From NCBI RefSeq assembly GCF_963921235.1, contig NC_086126.1, positions 12,400,001 to 12,464,000 of the forward strand: a stretch of DNA of 64,000 nt. Reading direction: 5' to 3'. The position numbers and the translations under genes were made by a program. This DNA comes from Mobula hypostoma (taxonomy: Eukaryota). This document shows positions 1,528 to 34,045 of the stretch, in pieces. The first letter of the stretch is position 1. The number at the start of each line of letters is the position of its first letter. Below the pieces are notes generated by a model. That model made no database searches, was not told where the DNA came from, and saw only the letters and a program-made list of their open reading frames with translations.

Positions 1528-2150
1528 AGGGGCCACTTCCAGCACCTGCACCACCACCACCCCCGTCTGCCACAAGCGAAACTTTTAATTCCGATTTCCA
1601 TTCCCGTTTCCGTTCTGGCGTGTCGGTGCAAGGCCAAAATGTGGTTACCCTCAGGGTGGAGAAACAACACCTTATATTCCGTCTGGGAAGCCTTCACCAC
1701 AATGTCATGAATATTAATTTTCTCCTTGTGGTATAAAAACGTTCCCCACCCCCTTCTTCCTGTTCCCAACTCTGACCTTTCACTTCTTATTACCTCCATC
1801 AGGGTCCCCTCCTCCTTCCCTTTCCCCTATGGTCCACTCTCCTCTCCCCTCTGGTTCCTTCCTCTCTCCCACTCACCCGGCTTCACCTATCACCTTCCAG
1901 CTAGCGTCCTTCCCCTCCCTCCAGCTGCTTGTCCAGACGTCTTTCCCCTTTCCTCTCAGTCCTGAAGAAAAGATCTTGGCCCAAAACCTCTCTTTTCCAT
2001 CGTCCAGCCGAAGGGTCTCGGCCCGAAACGTCGATTGTACTTTCTTTTCCCACATAGATGCTGCCTGGCCTGCTGAGTTCCTTCATAATTTTGTGTTTGT
2101 GTACGCGTTGCTTTGGATTTCCAGCATCTGCTCCTTTCTCGTGTTTGCAA
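1528..2150 (+). mobile_element. 3' continuation of the Penelope-like element (GIY-YIG tail and pLTR with degenerate hammerhead)
   Basis: Matches the [13 protein letters not shown]-coding region and the terminal gatgctgcctggcctgctgagttc...ttccagcatctg motif seen in other copies. Confidence 0.7.
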
Positions 2151-2203
2151 TGTCACAAAAAGAAGTGGGGGGTTGGCGGATTTGGGGGCGGCAGCCCCGC
2201 AGA

Positions 2204-2233
2204 AAGATGGCGTGGCCAGAGCGGGGCGGAAGT
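2204..2233 (+). promoter_or_regulatory. Putative cystatin copy 1 promoter motifs (YY1-like AAGATGGCG; GC-box/ETS GGGGCGGAAGT)
   Basis: Motifs at 2204-2212 and 2223-2233, conserved at the same offset before copy 2. Confidence 0.5.
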
Positions 2234-2294
2234 AACGAGTGAAAAGCGGAGGAAGAGACGCCAACACCTGTTATTTGCTTTACTGCGGAGGAAG

Positions 2295-5200
2295 ATCGGT
2301 GCGGTTCTGGTGGTGTTGGTGTTGATGTTGGGGGCGGCGGATGTGGGGGCGACCTCCATGCCGGGCGGCCTCAGCCCCGTGCCCACAGATGACCCCGGGG
2401 TGGTGAACGCGATGCGGGCAGCGGAGGAGTATTTCAATCGCAGATCCAACGACGAGTTTTACTCCATGGTGTCGAATGTGACATCGGCCGAAACAGAGGT
2501 GATGGGGAGGGAAATAGGAGGGGGAGGGGCGGGAGGAGGGCGGTGGGGGGGAGAGGGAGGGAGGAGAGGGGAAGGCAGGGAGGAGGGGTGGGAAGTGGGG
2601 AGTAGCGAGGAGTGAAAGAGGCAATGGAGAGGGGCAGGGAGGGGGGTAAGTGGGGAATAGACTGGGTGGGCAGAGGAGGGGAAGTGGGGAGGAGAGTGGG
2701 AAGGGGAAGGGTGGGAAGAGGGGGAGGGGAGGTGAGGATGGGGAGCTGAGATGGGATAAAAGGGGAGGAGGAGACGGAAGGAGGGGAGGTGAGGGAGGAG
2801 GAAGATATTGAGGGAGAGGGGGAGACGTAGAGGGAGGGAGAGTGGGAGGAGGGGTGGGAGCGGGGGAAGATCGGGTGGAGGTGTAAGGGAGGGGCAAGAG
2901 GAGGGGAGAGTGGGGAGAAGGGTGTGGGGGAGAGGGCGAGGGAGGATACGGAGAATCTGCACAGAGATATGTATAGGTTAAGTCAGTGGGCAAATGTCTG
3001 TCAGATGGAGTACAATGTTGGTAAATACGAGGTCATCCAGTTTGGAAGGAAAAAAGGACGAGCAGATTATTATTTAAATGGTAAAAGATTGCAGCATTCT
3101 GCTGTACAGAGGGACTCGGGAGTGCTTGCGCATGAATCACGAAAGGTTGGTTTGCATGTACAGCAGGCTATCAAGCAAATGATGTTAGCCTTTATTGCTG
3201 GAGGGATTGAATTCAAGAGCAGGGAGGTTATGCTGCAACTGTACTGGGTACTGGTGAGGCTGCACCTGGAGTACTGCGTGCAGTTCTGGTCTGCTTGCTT
3301 CAGGAAGGATATACTGGCTTTGGAGGTTCACCATGTTGAGACTAGAGAGGAGGGTGTGAGACTATAAGCAGAGATTGAAATGCCTGGGACTGTACTTGCT
3401 GGAAATCAGAAAAATGAGAAGAAATCTTAGAGAAAAATACAATTATGAAAGAGATAGAGCCAGGAACGTTCTTTGCACTGGTAGGTGAGACTAGAACTAG
3501 GGGACATAGCCTCAAGATTCAGGGCAGTAGATTTAATTGGGGAAAGGCAAATTACGATGCTATAAGGCTGGAACTTGCTAGTGTGAATTGGGATGATGTT
3601 TTTGCAGGGAAATGTACTATGGACATGAGGTCGATGTTTAGAGATCTCTTGCGAGATGTAAGGGATAAATTTGTCCCGGTGAGGAAGATAAAGAGTGGTA
3701 GCGTGAAGGAACCATGGGTGACAAGTGAGGTGGAAAATCTAGTCAGGTGGAAGAAGGCAGCATACATGAGGTTTAGGAAGCAAGGATCAGATGGGTCTAT
3801 TGAGGAATATAGGGAAGCAAGAAAGGAGCTTAAGAAGGGGCTGAGAAGAGCAAGAAGGGGGCATGAGAAGGCCTTGGCGAGTAGGGTAAAGGAAAACCTC
3901 AAGGCATTCTTCAATTATGTGAAGAAAAAAAGGATGACAGGAGTGAAGGTAGGACCGATTAGAGATAAAGGTGGGAAGATGTGCCTGGAGGCTGTGGAAG
4001 TGAGCGAGGTCCTCAATGAATACTTTTCTTCGGTATTCACCAATGAGTGGGAACTTGATGATGGTGAGGACAATATGAGTGAGGTTGATGTTCTGGAGCA
4101 TGTTGATATTAAGGGAGAGGAGGTGTTGGAGTTGTTAAAATACATTAGGACGGATAAGTCCCCGGGGCCTGACGGAATATTCCCCAGGCTGCTCCACGAG
4201 GCGAGAGAATAGATTGCTGAGCCTCTGGCTAGGATCTTTATGTCCTCGTTGTCCACGGGAATGGTACCGGAGGATTGGAGGGAGGCGAATGTTGTTCCCT
4301 TGTTCAAAAAAGGTAGTAGGGATAGTCCGAGTAATTATAGACCAGTGAGCCTTACATCTGTGGTGGGAAAGCTGTTGGAAAAGATTCTTAGAGATAGGAT
4401 CTCTGGGCATTTACAGAATCATGGTCTGATCAGGGACAGTCAGCATGGCTTTGCAAACGGCAGATCGTGTCTAACAAGCCTGATAGAGTTCTTTGAGGAG
4501 GTGACCAGGCATATAGATGAGGGTAGTGCAGTTGATGTGATCTACATGGATTTTAGTAAGGCATTTGACAAGGTTCCACACGGTAGGCTTATTCAGAAAG
4601 TCAGAAGGCATGGGATCCAGGGAGGTTTGGCCAGGTGGATTCAGAATTGGCTTGCCTGCAGAAGGCAGAGGGTCGTGGTGGAGGGAGTCCATTCAGATTG
4701 GAGGTTTGTGACTAGTGGTGTCCCACAAGGATCTGTTCTGGGACCTCCACTTTTCGTGATTTTTATTAACGACCTGGATTTGGGATAGAAGGGTGGGTTG
4801 GCAAGTTTGCAGACGACACAAAGGTTGGTGGTGTTGTAGATAGTGTAGAGGATTGTCAAAGATTGCAGAGAGACATTGATAGGATGCAGAAGTGGGCTGA
4901 GAAGTGGCAGATGGAGTTCAACCCGGAGAAGTGTGAGGTGGTACACTTTGGAAGGACAAACTCCAAGGCAGAGTACAAAGTAAATGGCAGGATACTTGGT
5001 AGTGTGGAGCAGCAGAGGGATCTCGGGGTACATGTCCACAGATCCCTGAAAGTTGCCTGACAGGAGGATAGGGTAGTTAAGAAAGCTTATGGGGTGTTAG
5101 CTTTCATAAGTCGAGGGATAGAGTTTAAGAGTCGCGATGTAATGATGCAGCTCTATAAAACTCTGGTTAGGCCACACTTGGAGTACTGTGTCCAGTTCTG

Positions 5201-6427
5201 GTCACCTCACTATAGGAAGGATGTGGAAGCATTGGAAAGGGTACAGAAGAGATTTACCAGGATGCTGCCTGGTTTTGAAAGTATGCATTATGATCAGAGA
5301 TTAAGGGAGCTAGGGCTTTACTCTTTGGAGAGAAGGAGGATGAGAGGAGACATGATAGAGGTGTACAAGATAATAAGAGGAATAGATAGAGTGGATAGCC
5401 AGCGCCTCTTCCCCAGGGCACCACTGCTCAATACAAGAGGACATGGCTTTAAGGTAAGGGGTGGGAAGTTCAAGGGGGATATTAGAGGAAGGTTTTTTAC
5501 TCAGAGAGTGGTTGGTGCGTGGAATGCACTGCCTGAGTCAGTGGTGGAGGCAGATACACTCGTGAAGTTTAAGAGACTACTGGACAGGTATATGGAGGAA
5601 TCTAAGGTGGGGGCTTATATAGGAGGCAGGGTTTGAGGGTCGGCACAATATTGTGGGCCGAAGGGCCTGTACTGTGCTGTTATATTCTATGTTCTATGTT
5701 CTATTAAGACAGAGATGAGGAGGAACTGCTTTTCCCAGAGAGTGGTGAATCTGTGGAATTCTCTGCCCAATGAAGCAGTGGAGGCTGCCTCAGTAAATAT
5801 ATTTAAGACAAGGTTGGATAGATTTTTGCATAGTAGGGGAATTAAGGGTTATTGGGAAAAGGCAGGTGGGTGGAGATGAGTCCAAGGTCAGATCAGTCAT
5901 GATCTTATTGAGTGGCGGAGCGGGCTCGACGGGCCGGATGGCCGACTCCTGCTCCTATTTCTTATGACCAGCAGAGTAAAGGTGGTGGGTGTGTGCAGAT
6001 GGGTGACCACTCCTGGCTCGATACACACAGACACCCTGTAGAGATGTTTTGAGGCCTTTCTGACTGTAATGTGCTCTTGCAGGTGGTGGCGGGGTTCCTG
6101 TACTATCTCACCCTGGAGCTGAGAACCACCGTCTGCAGGAAGAGTTCTCTTTCCCAGGACTGTCCCTTCCACGAGGATCCTCAATATGCCAAGGTGAGCG
6201 ATCAGTGCACTGGTGGTCTCGGGAGTGAGGGGCGGGGGTCCTGTCCCCAGGGACACTGGAACCTGGTGGGGATTCATGAATCTGCTGGGGTACCGGCGGG
6301 AAACTCTTTTAATACTGGCCTCTGCTTTTCCCCGGAGACAATGACCTGTAAATTTCAAGTCCTGCAGCAACTGTGGGTCGGGCCCACGCAGGTGACTGAA
6401 TCTTCTTGCTCCAGGACGGCCAAGTGA
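2295..6427 (+). CDS. Type-2 cystatin, copy 1 (divergent; start codon position is ATC, possibly an incipient pseudogene)
   Basis: Exons 2295-2498, 6083-6193 and 6338-6427 with GT-AG phase-0 introns. Signal-peptide-like N-terminus, [11 protein letters not shown]|VVAG, four Cys, LW in place of PW. First in-frame ATGs at 2325 and 2358. AATAAA at 6842-6847. Confidence 0.8.
2505..2945. repeat. G/A-rich low-complexity tract in cystatin copy 1 intron 1
   Basis: Nearly pure purine with G runs on the + strand. Confidence 0.85.
2946..3536 (+). mobile_element. Older CR1 LINE ORF2 3' fragment, interrupted by a younger CR1 and resuming at 5704-5966
   Basis: LEYCVQFWS-type RT C-terminal motif; the sequence joins up across the inner insertion. 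Confidence 0.8.
3537..5703 (+). mobile_element. 5'-truncated CR1 LINE ORF2 (reverse transcriptase) with stops and a frameshift
   Basis: [43 protein letters not shown] and FADDT motifs; 3' (TTCTATG)n-type tail; TTAA at both junctions. Confidence 0.95.
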
Positions 6428-7512
6428 CCGGTCTGTAGGACCCCGGCGGCACACAGCGTGGCGCGCACCGCTCAGCTAAAGCAATAATTCTGATCACCAG
6501 GTCAAATGGATACGAATACAGCACTTTACCACGGCCCGGGGCGCCTCGTAATGCAATCTCCACAACGCATACAGACAAACGCGAGTGTGTATACACTCGC
6601 TCAGTAATATACATTCCCCAGGCTACTATCTCTCTCTCTCTCTTTCACACGCCATCTTTGAGTTGGAACCCTTGAAAGATGGCTCGTCATAGACATCGAG
6701 GGGCCAAATAACCCGCTCCTGTGCCAGACCGCTGTACGTTCTGTGCTCAGTAGTATTTGGGCTCCAACTCGCGGGCTGACCAGTTATTACCATAATTGTA
6801 TACTGTAATTAATCTGCAAATGTATATTTTTATACTTGCGCAATAAAGTTTTTGCATTCTTAGTCTGCCTGTGTTTGCAATGTTAACAGGGTAACTGACT
6901 GCATGAGGTTAACACAGTACTGACCGCCACGGACTATAGTGAGCCCAGCGATCGTGGTTAGACCCAGCATCTCGATAGGAGCGACCAGTCTCAGTCAGTG
7001 CTGTAATTTCAAACATGGCGGGAGTGTGTGAGACCAGAGGACTCGGCCTCCGAAAAGAAGGTCGTCCTTTTAGGAGGGAGAGGAGTAATTTCTTCAGCCA
7101 GAGTGTGGTGAATCTGTGGAATTGGTTGCCACAAGCAAGCCTTTACGTTTAAGACAGATTGACAGAATCTTGATTGGTCAGGGCATAAAGTGACACGGGA
7201 AGAAGGCAGGAGATCGGGGGCTGGGAGGGAAAATGATGAAATGGCGGAGGAGATTCGACGGGCCAAATGGCCTAATTCTGCCTTCATATCTCACGGCCTT
7301 ATAAAGTGTATTCATCATGGAGAATGTACCGTTTCCCGTTCTCATGCAGGTTTTCTCGTTTCTTTTCCATAGATGTTGAGTTCCTCCAGCATTTTGTGTT
7401 TCTGTGCGCGTTGCTTTGGATTTCCAGCATCTACTCCTTTCTCGTGTTTGCAATGTCACAAAAAGACCAAGACGTAGGGAGATTGCGAATTTGGGGGCGG
7501 AAGCCCCGCAGA

Positions 7513-7543
7513 AAGATGGCGTGGCCAGTGCGGGGCGGAAGTG
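7513..7543 (+). promoter_or_regulatory. Putative cystatin copy 2 promoter motifs (YY1-like; GC-box/ETS)
   Basis: AAGATGGCG at 7513-7521 and GGGGCGGAAGTG at 7532-7543; duplicate of 2204-2233. Confidence 0.5.
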
Positions 7544-7603
7544 ACGAGCGAAGGGCGGAGGAAATGACGCCAACGCCTGTTATTTTCTTTACTGCGTAGT
7601 AAG

Positions 7604-10243
7604 ATGGGTCCGATTCTGGTGGTGGTTTTGGTGTTGATGTTGGCGGCGGCGAAGGTGGGGGCGACCTCCATGCCGGGCGGCCTCAGCCCCGTGGCTACAG
7701 ATGACCCCGGGGTTCTGAACGCAATCGGGGTGGTGGAGGAGGACTTCAACCGCAGGTCCAACAACGAGCTTCACACCGCGGTGTCGAATGTGATATCTGC
7801 CCAAAAACAGGTGATGGGGAGGGAAATAGGGGGAGGGGGAGGGTAGGGAGGGATGGGGAAGGCTGGGTAGGGAGGGAGGCGGAAGGGGTAGGTGGGGAGG
7901 GGAGGGAAAAGGGGTGGGTGGGGAGGCGAGGGGGAAGGGGTGGGGAGGGGAGGCGAGGGGGCGGTGGGGAGGGAGGGGGCGGTGGGGAGGGATGGGGAAG
8001 GCTGGGTAGGGAGGGAGGCGGAAGGGGTGGGTGGGGAGGCAAGGGGGAAGGGTGGGTGGGGAGGCGAGGGGGAAGGGTGGAGAGGGAGCGGGAAGGGTGG
8101 GTGGGGAGCGGAGTGAGGGGGAAGGCTGGGTAGGGAGGGAGGCGGAAGGGGTAGGTGGGGAGGGGAGGAAGAAGGGGTAGGTGGGGAGGGAGCTGGAAGG
8201 GTGGGTGGGGAAGGGAGGGAGGGGGAAGGCTGGGTAGGGAGGGAGGCGGAAGGGGTAGGTGGGGAGGGGAGGGAAAAGGGGTGGGTGGGGAGGCGAGGGG
8301 GAAGTGGGGAGGGGAGGCGAGGGGGCGGGTGGGTGGGGAGGGATGGGGAAGGCTGGGTAGGGAGGGAGGCGGAAGGGGTGGGTGGGGAGGGGAGGGGGAA
8401 GGGTGGGGAGGGGAGGCAAGGGGGCGGTGGGGAGGGAGGGGGCGGAGGGGAGGGATGGGGAAGGCTGGGTAGGGAGGGAGGCGGAAGGGGTGGGTGGGGA
8501 GGCGAGGGGGAAGGGGTGGGTGGGGAGGGGGAAGGGTGGAGAGGGAGCGGGAAGGGTGGGTGGGGAGGGGAGTGAGGGGGAAGGCTGGGTAGGGAGGGAG
8601 GCGGAAGGGGTAGGTGGGGAGGGGAGGGAGAAGGGGTAGGTGGGGAGGGAGCGGGAAGGGTGGGTGGGGAGGGAGGGGGAAAGCTGGGTAGGGAGGGAGG
8701 CGGAAGGGGTAGGTGGGGAGGAGAGGGAAAAGGGGTGGGTGGGGAGGTGAGGGGGAAGTGGGGAGGGGAGGCGAGGGGGCGGGTGGGTGGGGCGAGATGG
8801 GGAAGGCTGGGTAGGGAGGGAGGCGGAAGGGGTGGGTGGGGAGGGGAGGGGGAAGGGTGGGGAGGGGAGGCGAGGGGGCGGTGGGGAGGGAGGGGGGGTG
8901 GGGAGGGATGGGGAAGGCTGGGTAGGGAGGGAGTCTGAAGGGGTGGGTGGGGAGGCGAGGGGGAAGGGGTGGGTGGGGAGGGGGGAAGGGTGGAGAGGGA
9001 GCGGGAAGGGTGGGTGGGGAGGGGAGTGAGGGGGAAGGCTGGGTAGGGAGGGAGGCGGAAGGGGTAGGTGGGGAGGGAGAAGGGGTGGGTGGGGAGGCGA
9101 GGGGGCTGTGGGGAGGGAGGGGGCGGGGTGGGTGGGGAGGGATGGGGAAGGCTGGGTAGGGAGGGAGGCAGATGGGGTGGGTGGGGAGGTGAGGGAGAAG
9201 GGGTGGGTGGGGAGGGGAGAGGGAAGGGTGGGGAGGGAGCGGGAAGGGTGGGTGGGGAGGGGGAAGGGTGGGGAGGGAGCAGGAAGGGTGGGTGGGGAGG
9301 GGAGGGAGTGGGAAGGGTGGGTAGGGAGGGAGGGGGAAGGGATAGGTGGGTGGGGAGGGCGTGGGAAGGGGTGGGGAGGTGAGGGGGCGGTGGGGAGGGA
9401 TGGGGCGGGGTGGGTGGGGAGGGAGGGGGAAGGGGAGGGAAGGATGTGAGGGTGGATGAATACAGAGCTCTGGTGGGGGACTGTCTTATTGATACTGAGC
9501 TCCAGATGATTCGTATCGCATCATTGAACAAAGGGGATGGCGATGGACTTTAGGATGGGGAGGGTGAGGAGAGTAGGGTAGGGTGGGGAGAGGAGGTGAT
9601 AATGTGGGCAGGGGAGGAGGGGGTCGAGAGGGGAGCGGGGTTAGGGTGGGGAGGGGAAGTGGGGGAGGAGAGGGAGAGAATACGGAGAGGGGGCTTGTGG
9701 AGTGTGAGGTGAGGAAGGGATGGGAAGGAAGGGGAAGTGCTGAGGAGTGGAGAGTCGAGTAGGGGCGAGGGAGGGGAAGTTTGCAGGAGGTGGGGAGCAG
9801 AGCGCCAGTGTGGGGGAATTCCCCGAGGCCCAGTGAAAGTAGTTTGTCAGTCGCTGCGCTTCTGACTCTTGCAGGTGGTGTCGGGGTTAATGTACCACCT
9901 CTCCCTGGCGCTGAGAACCACCGTCTGCAGGAAGGTTGAACCTCGTTCAGAGAACTGCCCCTTTCACCAGGACCCTCAATATGCCAAGGTGAGTGATCAG
10001 TGCGCTGGTGGTCTCGGACGAGAGGTGGGGGAGGCGAGTGGGGGGGGGGGTCCCGTCCCCGTTGCAGACTGGAACATGGTGGGGATTCATGTATCTGCCG
10101 GGGTACCAGCGGGGAGCTGAATTTTAATACTGGCCTCTTGTTTCTCCCCGCAGAGAACGACCTGTAGATATAAAGTCTGGTACCGCCCGTGGATCGGGCA
10201 CATGGAGGTGAACAGTGCTGAATGCCACGAGGTGTTACCATGA
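7604..10243 (+). CDS. Type-2 secreted cystatin, copy 2 (136 aa, canonical motifs; at the CST6-syntenic position)
   Basis: Exons 7604-7810, 9875-9988 and 10154-10243. ATG, hydrophobic signal peptide, PGG, Q|VVSG (QxVxG), two Cys pairs, PW. AATAAA at 10477-10482. Confidence 0.92.
7820..9450. repeat. G-rich compound tandem repeat in cystatin copy 2 intron 1
   Basis: Recurring unit ggggaaggctgggtagggagggaggcggaagggg; it produces the spurious Pro- and Gly-rich ORFs. Confidence 0.9.
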
Positions 10244-11217: not shown

Positions 11218-11469
11218 TATAAAGGGTTAGATGTGCCACATTCACCAAATCAAAACACACAATTTTTACACCAAAATGTCCATATTAGGGCCATTCTGAG
11301 CTACTGACACAAATGGCCTCTCATTCATTCATGCATTTATTAATAAATCAGCTTTTTACAGCGTAAAATCTGAAAGACCCCGGTGATTTCGGGTCACTAT
11401 GATCCATAAAGAGCGATTAAGGATTAGTGGGAGGGTTTTCGGGAAGGTTTTGTCTCCGGGCCGCTGCCT

Positions 11470-13609
11470 TCAGAGGAACGCGTCGCACCACTCCTTCAGG
11501 CAACGGTAGCAGTCCTCCGACTGTCTGTTGCCCGCGTAGCATACCTGTCTCATCCAGGTCTTGAAGACGGCCTTGTCCTGCTTCAGCAGCAAGAATTGGC
11601 CCAGCACGTCCTTGGCCTGCATCGGGAGGGAGCGGAGAACAGGAAAAGGCGTTAAACACGCGCGCACGCACACACAAAAACTCAGGAACTCAGCAGGTCA
11701 AGCAACATCTATCCACAAACTTCAGCTCGTTTCCAGGAGAACGGGGTTGAGATGGAAAATGAATCGGCCATCATTCAATGGCAGGCAGACTCGATGGGCC
11801 TAATTCTGCTCCTAAATCGTATGGTTGTGTACACTGGAATTTAGAAGGATGAGAGGGGATCTGATTGAAACATAGAAGATTATTAGGGAATTGGACCAGA
11901 GGCAGGAAACATGTTCCCGATGTTGGGGGAGTCCAGAACCAGAGGCCACAGTTTAAGAATAAGGGGTAGACCATTTAGAACGGAGTTGAGGAAAAACTTT
12001 TTCACACAGAGGGTTGTGGATCTGTGGAACGCTCTGCCTCAGAAGGCAGTGGAGGCCAATTCTCTGGATTCTTTCCAGAAAGAGTTAGATAGAGCTCTTA
12101 AAGATAACGGAGTGAAGGGAGATGGGGAGAAGGCAGGAAAAGGGTACTGATTGTGGATGATCAGCCATGATCACAGTGAATGGTGGTGCTGGCTCGAAGG
12201 GCCGAATGGCCTACTCCTGCACCTATTGTCTATTGTCATTTACTACATTTATCCCATTTTCCCCCTCAACTCTACCCCCACTCCCCCCCCCACCACCACC
12301 TACATAATTGGGGCAGCTTAGAATTTGCTCACCAGCTGTGGTCCAGTGTCCACGGACCGTAAGACCACCGATCGTCAGCACACTATCAGACCCTAGGGCT
12401 TGTGAGTAGCTCTCTTTCAGACCAGTGAAGTTCGGCGTGTTCCCTTCGACTGGTTTTTACTGAAAGCATCCTATCCGTATGGATCGTGGCTTGGCCTGGC
12501 AGCTGCCCGACCCGAGACCGAGACACCACAGAGAGTTGGGCACATCGCCACCCTTCACCCCCCCCCCACCCTCCACGGACTCTGTCTACGGTTCTCGCTG
12601 CCTCGGTAAAGCAGCCGGAATAATCAAAGAGCCCACCTCGGGACATTCTCCCTGCTCCCCCTAGGCAGAACAGGGTAGCATAGTACGGGCTGTTCAGGTC
12701 ACGATGTTAGCCCTTTCCTGCCCGCCACGCCGCCGGCGTTTCGGGCAGCGATGAAAGTCCTCCGACTCTGGCAACGTTCAGGGCTTCCTTCATCGTGTCA
12801 GTGGCTTCCCCTCGGTTTTCACTCCAGTCAGTCCCGGGTGGAGGCTCGGGAATACTGTCGCACTCAGATGGAGAATGATTCTTCACTGCTGTGTCCGTAA
12901 CAGTTTCGTCTGACCAGTCAGCGTTGTTGGCCCCGAACCTGGAGGACCGGCGGACCTCTCTCAGTCTGACCTCTCCCCTTTGACCTGGCATGGGTCAAGA
13001 GCCAAAGAGTCCGGCCAACGTAGCTCTCTGGTTCACTGAAGCAGGCAAGCCTCCAAACCTTACGACACAGTTGTAGTCCTCTCAGAGGCCATGATGTTCT
13101 ACAAACATTTTAACCTACTCTAGGATGAATCTAAGCCTTCCCTCCATTTCTCTGTCATCCATGGCGCTTCAAAGTCTCTTACAAGCGTGCACCGTGCTCC
13201 CACCACTCTGCGTAAGAAAAATCAACTTCCCTCCCGCCCCATATACTTGCCTCCAGTCACCTTAAAATTATTCCCTCTCATATTAGCCATTTCTGCCCTA
13301 GGGAAGGGTCACTGACCCTCCACTGTGTCTCTGCCTCTCCTCGCCCTATACACTCCTGCAACTACAAAAGCATCAGAGCGCGTCCCAGCAGGGGCAAGGA
13401 CAGCTTCCGTCCTGCTGTTAAATGACATGGTCCCCGACTGCGACAAAACTGATTCTCGTCCTTACGATCTACCTCCGCGTGGGATGGCTCCCTGATTGAC
13501 TGCCAACACAGCGCTTTCGGAATCGGTTTAATATCACCGGCATATGTTGTGAAATTTGTTAAATTTGCGGCAGCAGCACAATGCAAGACATGATCATAGA
13601 GTAAGTACG

Positions 13610-13652
<43 letters not shown>

Positions 13653-16600
13653 AATAAACAGAGCAAAAAATAGGAAATAAAAAAGTAGTGAGGTAGTGTT
13701 CATGGGTTCAATGTCCATTCAGAAATCGGATGGCAGAGGGGAATAACCTGTTCCTGAATCCTGGGTGTGTGCCTTCAGGCTCCTGTACCTCCTCCCTGAT
13801 GGTAACATCAGCCCATAAAACACAGGAGCAGAATTAGGCCATTTGGCCCATCGAGTCTGCTCCAACATTCAATCATGGCTGATCCTTCTTTCCCCTCCTC
13901 AGCCCCAGTTCCCGGCCTTCTCCCCGTAACCTTTGATGCCGTGTCCAATCAAGAACCTATCAAGCTCTGCCTTAAATACACCCAATAACCTGGCCTCCAC
14001 AGCTGCCTGTGGCAAGAAATTCCACAAATTCACCTCCCCCTGGTGAAAGAAATTTCTCCCCATCTCTGTTTTAAATGGACGCCCCTCTATCCTGAGGTTG
14101 TGCCCTCTTGTCCTAGACTCCCCCACCATGGGAAACATCCTTTCCACATTTACTCTGTCTAGGCCTTTCAACATTTGAAAGGTTTCAATGAGATCCCCCC
14201 TCATCCTTCTGAATTCCAGCGAGTACAGACCCAGAGCTTCCAAATGTTCCTTGTATAATAACCCTTTCATTCCTGGAATCATCCTTGTGAACCTCCTCTG
14301 GGCCCTCTCCAATGCCAGCACATCTTTTCTAGGATGAGGGGCCCAAAACTGTTCACAATACTCCAGGTGAGGCCTCACCAGTGCCTTATAAAGCCCCAGT
14401 TTCACATCCCTGCTCTTGTATTCTCGACCTCTTGAAATGAATTCTAACATTGCATTTGCCTTCCTCACCACTGACTCAACAATGAGAAGAGGGCATGTCC
14501 TGGGTGGTGGGGGTCCTTAATGACGGACGCCGCCTTTCTGAGGCATCGCTCCTTGAAGATGTCCTGGATACGACGGAGGCTGGTGTCCATGATGGAACTG
14601 ACTGAGTTTACAACTCTCTGCAGCTTGTTTCGATCCTGTGCAGTAGCCCCCCCCCCCTCCCCAATGTCAGATGGTGATATGGCTGGACGGCAGTCTCTGT
14701 AACTGTAACACTTTGTGGTGATTTTCCCTCCCTGTAGCTCGATGTACTGCTGTTACGCGATCATCAGCATGGTCGGCAGGTAAAATAAAGCCTTTCACTG
14801 TGCCGCAGAAATGGAGCCGTAGAGAACTCTAGCTCTGAAATGGGCCCTGCCCAGCCGATCTTCTGCCCCGGCCCCTTGACCTGCAACCCGGGCCATAGCC
14901 CTCCATCCCCCTCCCATCCATCGACCTATCCGAACTTCTCCTTAAGTAAAAAGGTTACATTCCCCACTTGCCCTGGCAGCGCGCCCCCGCCCTCTGAGCG
15001 AAGCATTTTCCCCTCAGGTTCCCCCTTAAATATCTCACCCGGCACCCTCAAACCACGAGCTGTAAGTTCTTGTCTGACCTGACCCCAGTCGGAAGCGCCT
15101 GCTTGCATTGACCATTGTGTGAACGTTTCGGTAACATTTGAGTGGTCTTGGATATATGCTGTTTGAGTAAGCATTCTTGTTCGTTTAAATAATTTATTAC
15201 GGGTAATATGTATAAACAGGCGGATTGCGTACGTCATCACGCTACCACGTGGTACGTGCGCGCCTCGCTTGAAGTCAACACAAAAGTTAGACCCCCGTTA
15301 CCGGACACCCGTGTCTTCCTGTGAATTAGTTTAATGTTACAAAGCGTTACACCCTCTGGATACCTCGATCGAATCTCCCCTCATCCTGTGTCCCAGGAAA
15401 TAAGATCCACCTTTCCCGGTAGCTCAGGTCTCACGTCCCGGCAACATCCTTGTAAAATTTCTCTGCGCCCTTTCAATCTCATTGACATCTTTGCTGTCGG
15501 TCGGTGACCGGAACTACACACAATACTCCAAATTAGGTCCCGTCCACGTCTTGTGGAACGTCAACATCACACCTCATTATTTAGTTCATCACAATAATAA
15601 ATCAGTTCTCTAATTTAACTCATTATTGCTCAGCCCCCACAACAAGGTTTGGTTTTTGTGAAGGATTTTAGGGTTTCTCAGATGGGAGACGAGAGGGCGT
15701 ACAGGAGCGGGATGTACCAGCTGGTGGAGCGGTGCCCCAGCAACAACCTGGCACTCAACTTCAGTAAGACCAAAGAGCTGATTGTGGACTTCAGGAAGGG
15801 TAAGATGCGGGGACACGTACCAATCCTCACAGAGGGATCAGAGGTGGAGAGAGTGAGCAGCTTCAAGTTCCTGGGGTTCAACATCTCTGAGGATCTAACC
15901 TGGTCCCAACATATCGATGCAACTACAAGGAAGGCACGACAGCAGCTATATTTCATTAGGAGTTTGAGGAGATTTGCTTTGTCACCTAAAACACTCGCCA
16001 ATTTCTACAGATGTACCGTGGAGAGCATTCTGACCATTTGGTATGGGGGTGCGGTGGGGGCTACTGCACAGGATTGGAAGAAGCTACAGAGAGTTGTAAA
16101 CTCAGTCAGCTCCATCATGGGTACCAGCCTCCATGGTATCCGGGACATCTTCAAGGAGCGGTACCTTATTAAGGACCCCCACCACCCAGGACATGCCTTG
16201 TTCTCATTGTCACCATCAGGGAGGAGGTACAGAAGCCGGAAAGCACACACTCAACGATTCAGGAACAGCTTCTTCCCCTCTGCCATCCGGTTTCTCAATA
16301 TACATTGAACACATGAACACTACTTCACTTTTTAAAAAAAATTCTACTTATTTAATTTAACTATTGAATTTACATGTACTTACTGTAATTCACAATTATT
16401 TTCTATATTATTATTTTCTTCTATTGTGCTGCTGCCACAAAGACAACAAATTTCACAACATGTGCCGGTGATATTAACCTGCTTCTGATTCTAATGTCGT
16501 CCTTGCCAATCCCGGCCCCTTGGATCAGAGGGAGGAGCCATTCCCCAACCACCGCCACCCCCCCCCTCCCGTCTCCACCCCTCTCACCTTGCAGAAGCCC

Positions 16601-18902
16601 TTCTCCTCCAGGCGGCCCCCGAGGACCAGTCCGATTCCAGCCAGCTCCCTGACGGACTTCTCCTTCATCGGTTCCAGCACAAAGTTCTTGTGCTTCTGCG
16701 ACGTCGTGGCGACGGGGTGGAGAAGAGTTTTCTCTGGGAGGAAACACGAAGATGTCATTATCAGCGGGGTGTAAGGACCCCGGGGCCTGACTGGCTGCAT
16801 CACAACCTGGTATGGGAACACCAGCGCCTTTGAACAGAAAATCCTACAAAAGGGCGGTGGGTTCGGCCCAGTACATCACCGGTTACCATTGAGCACATCT
16901 ACGTGAAACGCTGTCATAGGAAAGCAGCGTCCATCAACAGAGATCCCCACAACCCAGGCCGTGCTCTCTTCTCGCTGCTGCCATCAGGTAGAAGGTACAA
17001 GAGCCTCAGGACTCGCACCACCAGGTTCAGGAACAGTTACTACCCCTCAACCATCAGGCTCCTGAACAAAAGAGGGTAACTACACTCACTTGCCCATCCA
17101 TTGAGATGTTCCCTCAACCAATGATCTCACTTTACGGACTCTTTATCTCATGTTCTCGTTATTTATTGCAATTTCTTTATATTTGCATTTGCACAGTTAG
17201 TTGTCTTCTGCACTCTGGTTGATCTTTCATTGATCCTGTTTACAGTTACTATTCTATAGATTTGCTGAGTATGCCCGCAGGAAAATGGATCTCGGGGGTG
17301 TACGTATATGATGAGGTATATCTACTTTGAGAAGACACAGCACAGCCCCTGCTTCATTAGGAGTATGAGGAGATTCGGAGTGACTCCAAAGACTCCTTGT
17401 AAGTTTCTGCAGATGTTCCACGGAGAGTATCCTGTCTGGTTTGGACCCACCTCCCTTAGAGAACAGGGTCAGAAAAAGCTGCAGAGAGCTGTAAATTCAC
17501 CCTGTTCATGCCCCCCCCCCACCATCGAGGACATCTTCAAGTGGCGATTTCTCCATCGTTAAGGACCCCCACCACCCAGGACATGCCCTCTTCTCATTGC
17601 TACCATCAGGGAGGAGGCGCAGGAGTCTCAACATTTTAGGTACAGCTTCTTCCCCTCCGCCACCAGATTTCTAAACAGTCCATGGGCTGGCCACATACTT
17701 TGCACAGCCGACATTGATCTACGCATAATTAGCCAGTCGGCAAAGTCCAATAAGAAGAAGTTAGGATTAAACAGAGTGGCCATTGTGTGAGTGGGGAGTT
17801 GAGGCTTTGGCGAGAAGAGCAGTTTTTTTCTTTCTTATTACACATTTAGTGCAGTGGAGATGCCAGACGGGATAGCGGAATGCTTGGGGGATGTGGGAAG
17901 GCAGGGAGACCTCCAGTGTCCCTGATATCTACAGCTGCAAGAGGTTCATCCAGCTGCAGCTTCTAACAGTCCGTGTCAAGGAGTTGGAGCTGGAAATGGA
18001 TGAACTCCGGATCGGTCGGGAGGCTGAGGAGGTAGCTACACCCAAGGTGCAGGACACAGGGCAAAGAGTGGAACTTTCGCTCTGCATTTCTCACTGGACA
18101 GGTCAGAAGGAGTTTTACCCTGAATCTTATCCCAGGAGTGTGTGATGGGATAGTGTAAGAGAGCGCCATCTAGTGTCCGACCCTGGGAGTGTGTGATGGG
18201 ACAGTGTAGAGAGATCGCCATCTAGTGTCCGGCCCTGGGAGTGTGTGATGGGACAGTGTAGAGAGATCGCCATCTAGTGTCCTTTCCTGAGAGTGTGTAA
18301 TGGGATTGTGTATAAAGGGAGCTTCAGTCTGTGTCTGACCCCAGGTGTGTGTGATGGGACGGTGTAGATGGAGCTTCACTCTGTATCTGACCCCGGGAGT
18401 GTGTGATGGGACGGTGTGGAGGGATCTTCACTCTGTGTCTGACCCCGGGGGTGTGTGATGGGACGGTGTAGAGGGAGCTTCACTCTGTGTCTGACCCCGG
18501 GAGTGTGTGATGGGACGGTGTAGAGGGAGCTTCACTCTGTGTCTGACCCCGGGAGTGTGTGATGAGACGGTGTAGAGGGAGCTTCACTCTGTGTCTGACC
18601 CCGGGAGTGTGTGATGGGACGGTGTAGAGGGTGTTTCACTCTGTGTCTGACCCCGGGAGTGTGTGATGAGACGGTGTAGAGGGAGCTTCACTCTGTGTCT
18701 GACCCCGGGAGTGAGTGATGGGACGGTGTAGAGGGAGTTTCACTCTGTGCCTGACCCCCGGGAGTGTGGCAGACACTCCGGACGGTGCGGAGCGAGCGCC
18801 ATCTAGTGTCCAAGGAGCAAACAGAAGTGACAAACTCCTCCCGAACACTCACTCACCTTTATCCAAGTTTTCATGATTGATAATAGAAGTTCGCAATTCC
18901 AT
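11470..18902 (-). CDS. Barrier-to-autointegration factor-like paralog, 112 aa with a 23-aa N-terminal extension
   Basis: Exons 18902-18857 (gag[19 protein letters not shown], phase-1 AAG|gtgagt donor), 16733-16588 (after cccag; [14 protein letters not shown]...AGIG...GFCK|gtgaga) and 11616-11470 ([12 protein letters not shown]...EWCDAFL*). AATAAA on the - strand at 11341-11336. 55 of 89 core residues identical to the neighbouring BANF1 by manual alignment. Confidence 0.85.
11830..12237 (+). mobile_element. CR1 3' end fragment
   Basis: [10 protein letters not shown]...FFTQRVV.LWN.LP motif and a (TATTGTC) tail. Confidence 0.85.
13617..13650. repeat. (GT)n microsatellite
   Basis: Visible directly in the sequence. 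Confidence 0.95.
13810..14480 (-). mobile_element. CR1 3' fragment
   Basis: ORF 13899-14471 contains [12 protein letters not shown] and RFTRMIPG. Confidence 0.9.
15660..16500 (+). mobile_element. Rex1/Babar-like LINE RT C-terminal fragment
   Basis: [37 protein letters not shown] and [12 protein letters not shown]; related pieces at about 14480-14650, 16785-17300 and 17330-17680. Confidence 0.8.
17720..18060 (+). mobile_element. CR1 ORF1 fragment (zinc finger/coiled coil)
   Basis: MWE...[24 protein letters not shown] resembles the ORF1 at 29489-29926. Confidence 0.65.
18131..18811. repeat. 52-bp minisatellite array in intron 1 of the BAF paralog
   Basis: Unit gggagcttcactctgtgtctgaccccgggagtgtgtgatgggacggtgtaga; period of 52 verified (18481 to 18533). 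Confidence 0.95.
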
Positions 18903-19299
18903 CTCGGGCTGCTAGCGAACTGCGCTTGTCTCCGCTTCCTTCGTCTCTGCTGCTTTGAAGCGGGACGCGTCGAGGGGAAGGCAGCCCAGACTGTCACAAA
19001 GGTGAGCCTTTGTGACCTGACCAACAGCTGCTGGGGGACCAGGCCCACTGTGACGTCCCGCGTCTGTCAGTGGAGGACGGGGGAGGGGAGGCGGGGGGTT
19101 GTGTCAGACTGCCAGGGCTCGTCTCCCCCGCTCTCCGGGGACAGATTTTCTGCGCTGGTGGGCCCGGAATTTATTCGCACAAGGGGCGATGAATCTCCGG
19201 AGTCCTCAACACAAGTCGGAACTGTGATCGTTGGAGCACAGGAGACCAGGCTCGATGGGCTGAATGGCCGAATTCTGCTCCAGCGGTCTTGTAGAAAGT

Positions 19300-19520
19300 A
19301 GAGGGTGGGGCGTTACCATGGCGGTCAGCGTAACGCTTCACAGCGCCAGCAATCGGGGTTCAAATCCTGTCTCCGTCAGTAAAGAGACGGCAACCCCTCC
19401 CTCCCCCGACTGCATTGAGTTCCTCCGGGCGCCCGGGTTTCCTCCCAATTTGCAAGCGCATACGGGTTAGGCTTAGTGAGTTGCGGGCACGCTATGGTAG
19501 CGCCAGAAGTGCGACGGCAC
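19300..19520 (+). mobile_element. tRNA-derived SINE (V-SINE/HE1-like), degenerate
   Basis: B-box-like GGTTCAAATCC followed by a V-domain-like ttcctccgggcg...ggtttcctccc segment. Confidence 0.55.
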
Positions 19521-24972: not shown

Positions 24973-25553
24973 TGATAGGAGTAATGAGAAAATTCCAGAG
25001 GAAATACTCGGCAACCGAACACAGAATTATTTATTCATATAAAATTTAGTAACAATTTCTACAGTGAAGTCGAGTCTCAACACTCAGCACAAAGTTATGG
25101 GAACGGGAAGGAGGATAGTGGGCAGGAAATAGTGAGTCCCAGCTCAGAACTGTGGCCTCTGGCATGGATCCAGAGAGAGAGAGAGAGAGAGAACGAACTG
25201 GTTTGTGGCACGATTGAACCCGTCACAGGACAGATTAGTCATTTTCAGGAGTACAGGGGTGTACAGTGGAGGGAAGGGAAGGGGAAGGTTTTCAAAAAAA
25301 CCTCACGCTAAGAATATCCAACGTCTTGGCTCAGGAGAGTGTGATGAGTTAGCGGCGCAGAAAGAGGGCAACCCTTCCAATGCTCTCCGGTTCCCAGCCC
25401 GGCCCTCTTAGTGGTTTCAGTAGTTAAGGGAGCACAAAGATGGAACCAAAGGAGCTCCAGAGAAAGCTGGGTGGGCCGATTTCACTCTGAAAGGGAGGGG
25501 GTTTTGCGGGGAGGGAACGCTGCTGCTGCGGGGGGGGGGGTCAGGGGGAAAGA

Positions 25554-28500
25554 TTACAGGAAGGCGTCGCACCACTCCCGCAGACAGGTGTGGCAGTCGT
25601 TGCTTTGCTTGGAGTTGGCCTGGCAGGTGTCCTTCAGCCACTCCTTGAACAGTTCCTCGTCCTTCTTCAGGACCAGGAATTGGCCCAGCACCACGTACGC
25701 CTGGGGGTGAGGGAGGGAGGGAGAGAGAGAGAGGTCAGCACACAGCTCCCGCAAACAAGCCGGCGTACAAAGCAGAGATCTCAACTATACCGAGCCCTTC
25801 AGCCAGTTTGGAACAGCGCAATTCAGCTGGCTTAGGCTTGTTGGCAAAGCAAACCGTAAAAGAGACAATAATCCTACAAACCCCACATGCCTTCTCCCCC
25901 AACCCCCATAACATTAGTGCAAGATTTCTAATCAGCCAATCAGGTGACAGCATTTCATAGCAACATAGAAAATAGGTGCAGGAGTAGGCCATTCAGCCCT
26001 TCAAGCCTGCACCGCCATTCAGTATGATCATGGCTGATCATCCAACTCAGAACCCTGTACCTGCCTTCCCTCCATACCCCCTGATCCCTTTAGCCACAAG
26101 GGCCACATCTAACTCCCTCTTAAATATAGCCAATGAACCGGCCTCAACAGTTTCCTGTGGCAGAGAATTCCACAGATTCACCACTCTCTGTGTGAAGAAG
26201 TTTTTCCTAATCTCAGTCCTAAAAGGCTTCCCCTTTATCCTCAAACTGTGGCCCCTCGTTCTGGACTTCCCCAACATCGGGAACAATCTTCCTGCATCTA
26301 GCCTGTCCAATCCCTTTAGGATTTTATACGTTTCAATCCGATGCCCCCTCAATCTTCTAAATTCCAACAAGTACAAGCCCAGTTCATCCAGTCTTTCTTC
26401 ATATGAAAGTCCTGCCATCCCAGGAATCAATCTGGTGAACCTTCTTTGTACTCCCTCTATGGCAAGGATGTCTTTCCTCAGATTAGGGGACCAAAACTGC
26501 ACACAATACTCCAGGTGTGGTCTCACCAAGGCCTTGTACAACTGCAGTAGTACGTCCCTGCTCCTGTACTCGAATCCTCTCGCTACAAATACCAGCATAC
26601 CATTCGCCTTTTTCACCGCCTGCTGTACCTGCATGCCCACTTTCAATGACTGGTGTATAATGACACCCAGGTCTCATTGCACCTCCCCTTTTCCTAATCG
26701 GCCACCATTCAGATAATAATCTATTTTCCTATTTTTGCCACCAAAGTGGATAACTTCACATTTATCCACATTAAATTGCATCTGCCATGAATTTGCCCAC
26801 TCACCCAACCTATCCAAGTCACCCTGCATCCTCTTAGCATCCTCCTCACAGCTAACACTGCCACCCAGCTTCGTGTCATCCGCAAACTTGGAGATGCTGC
26901 ATTTAATTCCCTCATCCAAGTCATTAATATATATTGTAAACAACTGGGGTCCCAGCACTGAGCCTTGTGGTACCCCACTAGTCACCACCTGCCATTCTGA
27001 AAAGGTCCCGTTTATTCCCACTCTTTGCTTCCTGTCTGCTAACCAATTCTCCACCCACACCAATACCTTACCCCCAATACCGTGTGCTTTAAGTTTGCAC
27101 ACTAATCTCCTGTGTGGGACCTTGTCAAAAGCCTTTGAAAATCCAAATATACCACATCCACTGGTTCTCCCCTATCCACTCTACTAGTTACATCCTCAAA
27201 AAATTCTATGAGATTCATCAGACATGATTTTCCTTTCACAAATCCATGCTGACTTTGTCCTATGATTTCACCACTTTCCAAATGTGCTGTTATCACATCC
27301 TTGATAACTGAGTCCAGCAGTTTCCCCACCACTGACGTTAGGCTAACTGGTCTATAATTCCCCGGTTTCTCTCTCCCTCCTTTTTTAAAAAGTGGGGTTA
27401 CATTAGCCACCCTCCAATCCTCAGGAACTAGTCCAGAATCTAACGAGTTTTGAAAAATTATCACTAATGCATCCACTATTTCTTGGGCTACTTCCTTAAG
27501 CACTCTAGGATGCAGACCATCTGGCCCTGGGGATTTATCTGCCTTCAATCCCTTCAATTTACCCAACACCACTTCCCTACTAACATGTATTTCGCTCAGT
27601 TCCTCCATCTCACTGGACCCTCTGTCCCCTACTATTTCTGGAAGATTATTTATGTCCTCCTTAGTAAAGACAGAACCAAAGTAATTATTCAATTGGTCTG
27701 CCATGTCCTTGCTCCCCATAATCAATTCACCTGTTTCTGTCTGCAGGGGACCTACATTTGTCTTTACCAGTCTTTTCCTTTATACATATCTATAAAAGCT
27801 TTTACAGTCCGTTTTTATGTTCCCTGCCAGTTTTCTCTCATAATCTTTTTTCCCCTTCCTAATTAAGCCCTTTGTCCTCCTCTGCTGAACTCTGAATTTC
27901 TCCCAGTCCTCAGGTGAGCCACTTTCTCTGGCTAATTTGTATGCTTCTTCTTTGGAATTGATCCTATCCCTAATTTCTCTTGTCAGCCACGGGTGCACTA
28001 CCTTCCTTGATTTATTCTTTTGCCAAACTGGGATGAACAATTGTTGTAGTTCATCCATGCGATCTTTAAATGCTTGCCATTGCATATCCACCGTCAATCC
28101 TTTAAGTGTCATTTGCCAGTCTATCTTAGCTAATTCATGTCTCATACCTTCAAAGTTACACCTCTTTAAGTTCAGAACCTTCGTTTCTGAATTAACTATG
28201 TCACTCTCCATCTTAATGAAGAATTCCACCATATTATGGTCACTCTTACCCAAGGGGCCTCTCACAACAAGATCGCTAATTAACCCTTCCTCATTGCTCA
28301 AAACCCAGTCCAGAATAGCCTGCTCTCCAGTTGGTTCCTCGACATGTTGGTTCAAAAAACCATCCCGCATACATTCCAAGAAATCCTCTTCCTCAGCACC
28401 TTTACCAATTTGGTTCACCCAATCTACATGTAGATTGAAGTCACCCATTATAACTGCTGTTCCTTTATTGCACACATTTCTAATTTCCTGTTTAATACCA

Positions 28501-33809: not shown

Positions 33810-34045
33810 GGTGCTAACGACGGTTTACAAGGCCGGCGACCCGGGTTCAATTCCCGCCGCTGCCCGTAAGGGGCTTGTACGTTCTCCCCGTGACCGCGGG
33901 GGTTTCCTCCGGTTTCCTCCTGCAGACCAAAGACTGACCGATTAATGGGTCATTGTAAATTGCCCCGTGATTAGGCTCGGGTTAAATCCGGGGTTGCTGG
34001 GTGGTGAGGCTCGAAAGGCCCATTCTGCACCGTATCTCAATAAAA
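33810..34045 (+). mobile_element. V-SINE-like tRNA-derived SINE
   Basis: GGTTCAATTCC B-box, then gtacgttctccccgtgaccgcgggggtttcctccgg, ending ctcaataaa. Confidence 0.65.

Follow-up and report, generated by a model that had tools for sequence, protein, structure and literature searches.

A diverged BAF gene beside BANF1 in cartilaginous fishes, probably an ancient tandem duplicate and a specialised BAF-fold variant

The window (the whole stretch of 64,000 nt analysed from Mobula hypostoma) contains a true BANF1 ortholog and, downstream of it on the same strand, a second BAF gene, called here the paralog (Table 1). The first-pass annotation had claimed such an intact gene, and the exons do occur where it placed them: three coding exons join in frame into an ORF of 112 aa, in which a complete BAF domain comes after an N-terminal tail of 23 residues. 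The 46-nt coding exon postulated upstream is present and in frame, with an ATG in a strong Kozak context (G at -3, G at +4; no further ATG in the preceding ~100 nt) and a consensus donor (AAAG/GTGAGT). Exon 2 is bordered by the acceptor tttcctcccag and the donor AAG/GTGAGA. It carries the segment TTSQKH and the AGIG hairpin. The phase-0 intron after the equivalent of K41 is found, as had been read, also in the BANF1 of the window (AAG/GTGAGC at 32814). Ala replaces the Met1 of BAF, with TTS kept at residues 25-27, and 55 of 89 residues are identical to the window's own BANF1 (62%, close to the first estimate). The gene has, as proposed, its own polyA signal (AATAAA) and its own CpG-rich 5' region (GC 0.58 and CpG observed/expected 0.73 over 18700-19300; observed/expected 0.69-0.73 for the 5' UTR and putative promoter region). 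In that region, the motif GTCACAGTGGG at 19054-19044 has the counterpart GGTCAYARTGGG in skate and chimaera (three-species alignment). An in-frame intronic ATG just 5' of exon 2 (MTSSCFLP...) was rejected as a conserved start, being absent from other species.

Table 1. Features of the BANF1, paralog, and cystatin locus (positions in the window)
Feature	Position	Strand	Remarks
Two tandem cystatin genes	2058..10120	+	Convergent with the paralog; synteny anchor
Paralog 3' UTR	11325..11469	-	AATAAA at 11341-11336
Paralog exon 3, coding part	11470..11616	-	BAF residues 42-89; TGA at 11472-11470
Paralog intron 2	11617..16587	-	Phase 0; position conserved among BAF genes
Alternative first exon 1b, unannotated	15079..15198	-	In intron 2; donor CAG/GT at 15079/15078
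Paralog exon 2	16588..16733	-	146 nt; final 8 tail residues and BAF residues 1-41
Paralog intron 1	16734..18856	-	Phase 1; many repeats
Paralog exon 1	18857..18902	-	46 nt; ATG at 18902-18900; codes 15 residues and one base
Paralog 5' UTR and putative promoter region	18903..19150	-	CpG-rich
Canonical BANF1, last coding exon	25554..25700	-	
Canonical BANF1, first coding exon	32814..32936	-	Met1 to K41

The cystatin exon ORFs are at 2058-2615 and 6071-6427 in the first gene (23.1 and 26 bits for Pfam PF00031, reaching the gathering score of 22.2) and at 7604-7846 and 9869-10120 in the second (20 and 21 bits, slightly under that score). The order BANF1, paralog, cystatin is the same in the window and in skate. 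In great white and bamboo shark, the paralog likewise lies on the downstream side of BANF1; in Mustelus, it lies between a cut 48-residue BAF product (upstream) and a cystatin. In skate and Mustelus, where the flank reached it, the downstream cystatin is on the opposite strand.

The predicted protein is identical at every residue to XP_062892618.1 (P0163; RefSeq "BAF A-like", Mobula hypostoma); the gene model is therefore not new. Annotated orthologs occur in at least 17 cartilaginous fishes, one chimaera among them (its protein is named 'BAF-like protein' in UniProt), and the paralog is already listed in RefSeq and UniProt for many of these fishes under uninformative automatic names. As to whether the clade had already been described, database entries exist, and no publication dealing with a BAF paralog of chondrichthyans came up in the literature searches. 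With single exons as queries, word-indexed protein searches retrieved only four chondrichthyan orthologs. In an exhaustive profile search, no paralog signature was present outside chondrichthyans among the 150 best matches. Of the 291 proteins collected, 21 combine Y43K with V44D, and each of these is a chondrichthyan paralog entry.

The exon lengths (46, 146, and 147 nt) are the same in ray, skate, and chimaera. Exon 1 keeps its 46 nt, its phase, and its GT donor at skate L001:10001-10046 and at chimaera L002:9086-9131, and its ATG, frame, and strong start context are kept in all three species. At the DNA level, exon 2 is 85% identical to skate L001:15355-15513 and exon 3 is 84% identical to skate L001:22106-22257. 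The codon analysis covers the same three species. With NG86, dN/dS between ray and skate is 0.04 for the paralog core (dS 0.92), 0.026 for BANF1, and 0.32 for the tail; for exon 1 it is about 0.26-0.32. The paralog core is constrained to a degree similar to BANF1, and the tail is looser. A pseudogene or an assembly artefact was rejected on the strength of undisrupted ORFs in at least 17 species, a core dN/dS of 0.04, and a dS of ~1.2 between the paralog and BANF1, a value that also rules out recent gene conversion with BANF1. Strong purifying selection therefore speaks for a specialised variant distinct from BANF1, as first suggested, and not for a decaying copy.

Residues 24-37, which are 5' of Met38, are nearly invariant over about 400 My. 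Residues T3-P14 of the BAF domain are invariant in 14/14 paralogs, position 12 excepted. Met1 is absent in rays and many sharks and present in chimaera and carpet sharks. With an invariant T3-P14 and yet no Met1, translation must start upstream. In chimaera and carpet sharks, where Met1 is present and the RefSeq models have 90-91 aa, the tail may be optional.

The paralog matches the SAM_BAF profile (Pfam PF02961) with 132.1 bits for a cut-off of 25, residues 25-111 covering positions 2-88 of 88, and each of its top PDB matches is a BAF (E = 1e-33). In the AlphaFold2 model, five helices of at least four residues are found at 28-35, 50-59, 65-74, 79-90, and 94-111, the pLDDT of the core is above 90 (93-98 in the block 41-110), and that of tail residues 1-24 is below 50. 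A compact all-helical BAF fold is thus predicted, with a tail predicted to be disordered. BAF is an obligate homodimer centred on G47 and binds dsDNA non-specifically through K6, the hairpin G25-G27, K33, N70, K72, and R75 (we take PDB 1CI4, 2BZF, and 6GHD as the canonical BANF1/BAF structures). The homodimer model of the paralog has an ipSAE of 0.79 (best control 0.02), a value that the predictor may owe to memorised BAF dimer structures; of proteins solved as pairs of one chain, 21 of 30 reach the ipSAE mark used, against none of 23 solved as single chains. Three runs agree at 100% in contacts, with a partner pLDDT of 95. The modelled interface includes L46-L51, K16, K43, D44, F88, and L89, with K16 contacting the C-terminal L89 of the partner. 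On this modelling, dimerisation of the BAF type has most likely been retained by the paralog.

Among the BAFs compared, G16K, E28L, D40C/T/L, Y43K, V44D, L58A, E61S/C/T, G68F/Y, and N70G occur only in the paralog. At G16, D40, Y43, V44, L58, and N70, which are near-invariant in canonical BANF1, the paralogs have no residue in common with the 36 other BAFs. Residue 16 is K or R in 14/14 paralogs and residue 75, canonically R, is E or D in 14/14. N70, invariant in the 36 other BAFs, is G in 13 of the 14 paralogs and R in one. At position 12 (A in BANF1), a lamin A/C contact, the paralogs have V, L, or G, and both of the residues that contact LEM partners, L58 and E61, are substituted. The net charge of the paralogs is +4 to +5 instead of -1 to -4. 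Conserved in the paralogs are TSQKH (the VRK1 target), K6, H7, the hairpin G25-I26-G27, and the dimer-core residues L46, G47, Q48, F49, and L50, while K33 and K72 of the DNA surface are conservatively R. At E17, S74, and D76, the paralog is the same as BANF1, and S19 is common only to the paralogs and chondrichthyan BANF1. The roles of the residues are taken from PMC10099716, PMC6212729, PMC8606531, and PMC8053085.

Reads of four RNA-like runs (presumed RNA) were mapped to 13000-18999. The joint 18857/16733 that the first-pass annotation expected in RNA is not among the 15 of 94 joints listed for these four runs; depth is zero over 18800-18999, which includes exon 1. Intron repeats dominate, and exon 2 coverage is indistinguishable from that of neighbouring repeats. 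Of the words sampled from 11325-11616 (exon 3 and 3' UTR), 100% occur in the four runs, and the lengths of the contigs point to 3' ends at about 11325-11333. Contigs from such runs show presence, not absence. At exon 1b, contig pieces without mismatches end exactly at 15078 in 4/4 runs, with an off-stretch remainder of 284-441 nt. Exon 1b seems to join exon 3 (a junction we infer), and its ATG at 15174, in frame with exon 3, gives an 80-aa ORF.

The explanation that we favour, and consider likely, takes the paralog for an ancient copy of BANF1, made in tandem and now a specialised BAF-fold variant. The duplication, shared by the cartilaginous fishes sampled, would predate the split between chimaeras and sharks/rays; the copy would have diverged fast and have been kept since then by purifying selection of roughly the strength seen for BANF1. 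Its surfaces would have been rebuilt, with a basic net charge, new charged residues (K16, K43, D44) at the dimer interface, K16 resembling the human G16R variant, and changes of N70 to G and R75 to E in helix 6. As rays and many sharks have lost Met1, their translation would begin in the conserved 46-nt upstream exon, and this would place a putatively disordered tail of ~23 residues ahead of the phospho-regulated N-terminus. The function would be that of a specialised chromatin/DNA-binding BAF, uncoupled from lamin and LEM partners, with an expression that is probably tissue-restricted. The two-gene BAF system and the germline-specific or foreign-DNA-directed role suggested in the first-pass annotation are conjectural.

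Three rival readings were weighed. Exon 1 could be a mere 5' leader, with the ray protein starting at Met38 (75 aa, without helix 1) or the locus being used mostly through exon 1b, in which case the full-length form would not be made. The four runs, with an exon 1b transcript instead of exon 1 coverage, and the 75-aa RefSeq models in Pristis and Heptranchias fit such a leader, but we hold it to be highly improbable: the near-invariance of residues 24-37 over ~400 My means that they are translated, the exon 1 features kept in ray, skate, and chimaera come with a dN/dS of about 0.26-0.32, exon 1b lacks conservation in both skate and chimaera, and the contigs behind the missing exon 1 coverage indicate presence only. 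On the origin of the gene, the paralog could be the cartilaginous-fish BANF2, moved beside BANF1, or an ohnolog, from a tandem pair that predates the vertebrate genome duplications and of which only cartilaginous fishes kept both copies here. No chondrichthyan BANF2 occurs among the 120 best matches to a teleost BANF2, and the UniProt name of the chimaera protein would suit this origin. In the ML tree, the paralogs form a clade (100/100) whose long stem measures 1.12 substitutions per site; it groups with BANF1 (87/86), apart from the BANF2 clade (100/95). A joint clade of paralog and BANF2 nevertheless withstands the AU test (delta lnL 1.7, p = 0.39), both analyses being based on 90 columns and on non-mammalian BANF2. 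The early reading of the gene as unlike BANF2 is thus backed by its position only. The paralog sits between BANF1 and cystatins wherever flanks were seen, whereas tetrapod BANF2 adjoins RRBP1, SNX5, and OVOL2, as a duplicated block (PMC3380836). Identity is 54% to coelacanth BANF2 vs. 62% to BANF1, and residues E17, S19, S74, and D76 side with BANF1 (S19 with the chondrichthyan one). A BANF2 or ohnolog origin is, to us, rather improbable.

In human BAF, R75E abolishes and N70T weakens DNA binding (PMC8606531); by analogy, the DNA binding of the paralog may therefore be lost, not kept. The paralog could then be a BAF-L-like regulator that heterodimerises with BANF1 and damps or redirects it. 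Because L46-L50 are unchanged, heterodimers with BANF1 look possible, the near-uniform loss of the otherwise invariant N70 is in line with such a role, and mammalian BANF2/BAF-L gives a precedent (PMC8268354, PMC8877947). On the other hand, K6, H7, and G25-I26-G27 are invariant, K33 and K72 are only conservatively changed, the net charge is raised to +4/+5, and normal BAFs are not uniform at position 75, where E, G, and T are each found. In addition, G16K resembles human G16R, which rigidifies the N-terminus and raises DNA affinity 7-fold (PMC10099716). We regard a regulator as unlikely. It is equally doubtful, but conceivable, that the tandem duplicate is a third vertebrate BAF kept for >400 million years as a basic chromatin cross-bridger that has shed lamin A/C and LEM docking. 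Its dimer would be locked by salt bridges (K16/K43 to the C-terminus of the partner, D44 to K53), the VRK1 switch would be hidden behind the disordered tail, and DNA would be compacted or guarded without the nuclear envelope, e.g., in sperm chromatin or in defence against cytoplasmic foreign DNA. If so, the paralog would be a natural, tolerated counterpart of the human disease change G16R.

Few small nuclear proteins are as constrained as BAF, in which single changes at A12 or G16 lead to human disease. The paralog shares with BANF1 the full-length SAM_BAF domain at 62% identity, the phase-0 intron after K41, the locus and strand, TSQKH, K6, G25-I26-G27, G47, W62, all four cysteines of the C-terminal half, and a predicted BAF-like homodimer. 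BANF1, however, has 89-90 aa, Met1, and two coding exons, whereas the paralog has 112 aa, Ala1, and three coding exons, is basic with a 23-aa tail predicted to be disordered, and differs at A12 (the progeria site, a lamin contact; V, L, or G) and at R75 (E). With BANF2/BAF-L, which is testis-enriched and found in bony vertebrates, it has in common a diverged second BAF gene, a retained dimerisation core, and a plausibly tissue-restricted expression. Unlike BANF2, which lies by SNX5/OVOL2, it is in tandem with BANF1, and the substitution sets differ. Fish and amphibian BANF2 are tailless, of 90-91 aa, and 72-80% identical to BANF1, unlike the paralog, and the ML tree separates the two, not decisively. 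The paralog would also correct the simple two-gene picture of vertebrate BAF (BANF1, BANF2). With disease positions changed, partner surfaces apparently rebuilt, and a tail before the phospho-switch, the paralog would be a natural separation-of-function variant and could reveal which BAF activities uncouple, among them the bridging of DNA, the binding of lamin and of LEM proteins, and control by VRK1. Its practical value is moderate; RefSeq already lists the gene. As in human G16R, found in a dominant motor neuronopathy (PMC10099716), residue 16 is basic in the paralog, and the modelled K16-L89 contact is the salt bridge proposed there for R16. Unlike G16R, the change in the paralog is fixed and ancient (K/R in 14/14 species) and stands amid many other substitutions.

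The three exons of the BAF paralog splice into a 112-aa ORF, with a 23-residue tail followed by a complete BAF domain in which Ala replaces Met1. The ATG of exon 1 has G at both −3 and +4, with no ATG visible upstream, and the 5′ region is rich in CpG (observed/expected 0.73). The paralog and the BANF1 of the window share a phase-0 intron following K41, and 55/89 residues are identical between their cores. All observations of the first-pass annotation are borne out: a second BAF gene downstream from BANF1 on the same strand, with no Met1, about 62% identity to BANF1, its own CpG-rich 5′ region and polyA signal, and an in-frame 46-nt upstream coding exon with a strong-context ATG and a consensus donor. 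The predicted protein has the same sequence as P0163 (XP_062892618.1, "barrier-to-autointegration factor A-like," Mobula hypostoma), and the RefSeq model is matched exactly.

Features of the BAF paralog locus (window positions unless stated)
Feature	Position	Strand	Remarks
Paralog exon 1	18902-18857	minus	ends AAAG/GTGAGT
Paralog exon 2	16733-16588	minus	preceded by polypyrimidine tract and CAG; ends AAG/GTGAGA
Paralog exon 3	11616-11470	minus	terminates in TGA
Paralog AATAAA	11341-11336	minus	
Exon 1b	15198-15079	minus	ATG at 15174
Exon 1b with promoter-like stretch	15079-15300	minus	stretch compact, CpG-rich, just upstream of exon 1b
GGTCAYARTGGG motif	19044-19054; skate locus (L001) ~9845-9860; chimaera locus (L002) ~8950-8965		
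Canonical BANF1	32936-32814 + 25700-25554	minus	89 aa, upstream of paralog
Cystatin exons	2058-10120	plus	
Retrotransposon-like ORFs	2900-5700	plus	inside first cystatin gene
G-rich tracts	7600-9600; 34000-36000		within second cystatin gene; upstream of BANF1 coding exon
Conserved non-coding block	25030-25095; L001:8184-8249		66 nt, ~500 nt past BANF1 stop

In ray, skate, and chimaera alike, the exons measure 46, 146, and 147 nt, and the GT/AG borders yield the database proteins. Conserved in the exon 1 peptide across ten species are M1, an acidic position 2, L/F3, R4, S/T6, and K15. With the exception of position 12, BAF residues 3–14 are invariant in 14/14 paralogs and, therefore, translated. 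Since Met1 is absent from the paralogs of rays, lamniform sharks, and the sawshark, the ATG of exon 1 is the sole conserved start; this indirect argument is the strongest case for a coding exon 1. Chimaera and carpet shark paralogs retain Met1, and RefSeq also models forms of 90–91 aa there, so that the tail may be optional in these fishes. In the AlphaFold prediction, the tail is disordered (pLDDT <50, residues 1–24) versus pLDDT 93–98 for the block of residues 41–110. The GGTCAYARTGGG motif, ∼130–170 bp upstream of the paralog ATG, is common to the ray, skate, and chimaera genomes; the chimaera version, TCAAGGTCA, resembles a nuclear-receptor half-site.

By the Nei–Gojobori method, the ray–skate comparison gives a dN/dS of 0.04 for the paralog core (dN 0.037, dS 0.92), 0.026 for BANF1, and 0.32 for the tail; in comparisons with the chimaera, silent sites are saturated. 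The BAF paralog is genuine and intact, under strong constraint, and carries a conserved extra coding exon. Recent gene conversion with BANF1 is ruled out by the dS of ∼1.2 between the two genes within one genome.

Every sampled word of exon 3 and the 3′ UTR is present in four runs of one study, guessed to be RNA. The first-pass annotation had proposed the junction 18857/16733 as a check; in the four RNA-like runs mapped over 13000–18999, depth is zero at 18800–18999 (the exon 1 region) and no exon 1–exon 2 joint occurs among those listed. In 4/4 runs, a zero-mismatch contig piece stops at 15078 and extends up to 15170–15198, and another 284–441 letters of the contig fall off the stretch; these remainders match ∼290 nt between 11616 and the poly(A) site. 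The genome at that edge reads CAG/GTCAGA, and the first base of exon 3 is G. We infer that 15198–15079 (exon 1b, within paralog intron 2) is an unannotated first exon that joins exon 3. Read from its ATG at 15174, the frame continues into exon 3 as an 80-aa ORF (a novel 32-residue head and the C-terminal half of BAF); just upstream are CACGTG, TGACGTA, and A/T-rich boxes. Because exon 1b shows no conservation in skate or chimaera, its promoter may be young, and possibly non-productive.

Paralog orthologs occur in at least 17 cartilaginous fishes (the 90% cluster plus its neighbors): in rays and skates (Mobula, two species; Hypanus, Narcine, Leucoraja, Pristis), in sharks (Carcharodon, Cetorhinus, Chiloscyllium, two species; Stegostoma, Rhincodon, Hemiscyllium, Mustelus, Heptranchias, Pristiophorus), and in the chimaera Callorhinchus. 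Among the proteins collected here, the paralog is limited to these fishes; it is already in databases yet uncharacterized, and literature searches found no paper describing a cartilaginous-fish BAF paralog. Two 90-aa versions in Callorhinchus milii (P0171 and P0172) differ at six residues and may come from two gene copies or from alleles that have diverged; the chimaera locus holds one paralog copy only within 10 kb, and BANF1 was not found within 10 kb of it. In several animals, predicted proteins contain two or three tandem BAF domains (P0007 of Cololabis saira, P0011, P0012, P0016, and others); these may be true fusions or merged models of tandem genes, and suggest repeated tandem BAF duplication.

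In a tree of 50 sequences and 90 columns, built with no mammalian BANF2, the paralogs form a single clade (100/100), whose stem measures 1.12 substitutions per site and whose internal branches are very short. That clade falls on the BANF1 side (87/86), apart from a BANF2 clade (100/95) of ray-finned fishes, coelacanth, and amphibians, and S at position 19 is found only in paralogs and chondrichthyan BANF1 when compared with 36 other BAFs. A joint clade of paralogs and BANF2 is not rejected by the AU test (p = 0.39), and the tree by itself is therefore not decisive. BANF1 and BANF2 flank OVOL1 and OVOL2 within a duplicated block (PMC3380836). Taking tree, S19, and BANF2 location together, the simplest reading is that BANF1 was duplicated in tandem on the stem lineage of chondrichthyans.

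At eleven positions, the paralog clade has residues absent from all 36 other BAFs compared. The main clade-only changes are G16K/R, E28L/I, D40C/T/L, Y43K, V44D, L58A, E61S/C/T/N, G68F/Y, and N70G, with A12V/L/G, K32G, K54Q, and R75E in addition; Y43K with V44D occurs in 21/291 collected proteins, all paralog entries. The net charge of the core is +4 to +5 in paralogs versus −1 to −4 in other BAFs. In BAF, the lamin A/C Ig-fold docks on A12, P14, and F88, the LEM domain on F39, Q48, V51, L52, L58, E61, and W62, and the dimer center is G47 (PMC6212729). The G16R change creates a salt bridge with the C terminus of the partner, makes helix 1 more rigid, and increases affinity for dsDNA 7-fold (PMC10099716); DNA binding is lost with R75E and weakened with N70T (PMC8606531); K72 pairs with pT3 (PMC8053085).

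The homodimer predicted from two copies of residues 24–112 reaches ipSAE 0.79 (best control 0.02), with 100% contact agreement over three runs and a partner pLDDT of 95; the ipSAE mark was reached by 21/30 proteins solved as one-chain pairs and 0/23 solved as single chains. The modeled interface comprises P14–K16, K43, D44, L46–L51, K53, C85, F88, and L89, with contacts K16–L89′, K43–L89′, and D44–K53′, and thus contains three clade-specific changes. Because the predictor may be recalling BAF dimers that have already been solved, the model indicates likeness rather than binding.

Upstream of the paralog, at a distance of 3–6 kb and in the same orientation, skate, great white, and bamboo shark carry an 89-aa BANF1; the corresponding upstream product in Mustelus is a cut BAF of 48 residues. 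Downstream, on the opposite strand, skate and Mustelus have a cystatin (only where the flank extended that far), and the window has the same layout. The mammalian neighborhood is EIF1AD–BANF1–CST6. By eye, the long ORFs in the first cystatin gene resemble the reverse transcriptase of a non-LTR retrotransposon. The introns of both BAF genes are full of related repeats, with 70%–90% identity to skate locus repeats. The two G-rich tracts are long, strongly skewed, and of low complexity (GC 0.64–0.69, GC skew ∼0.8). The non-coding block past the BANF1 stop, 85% conserved between ray and skate, is probably a 3′ UTR element.
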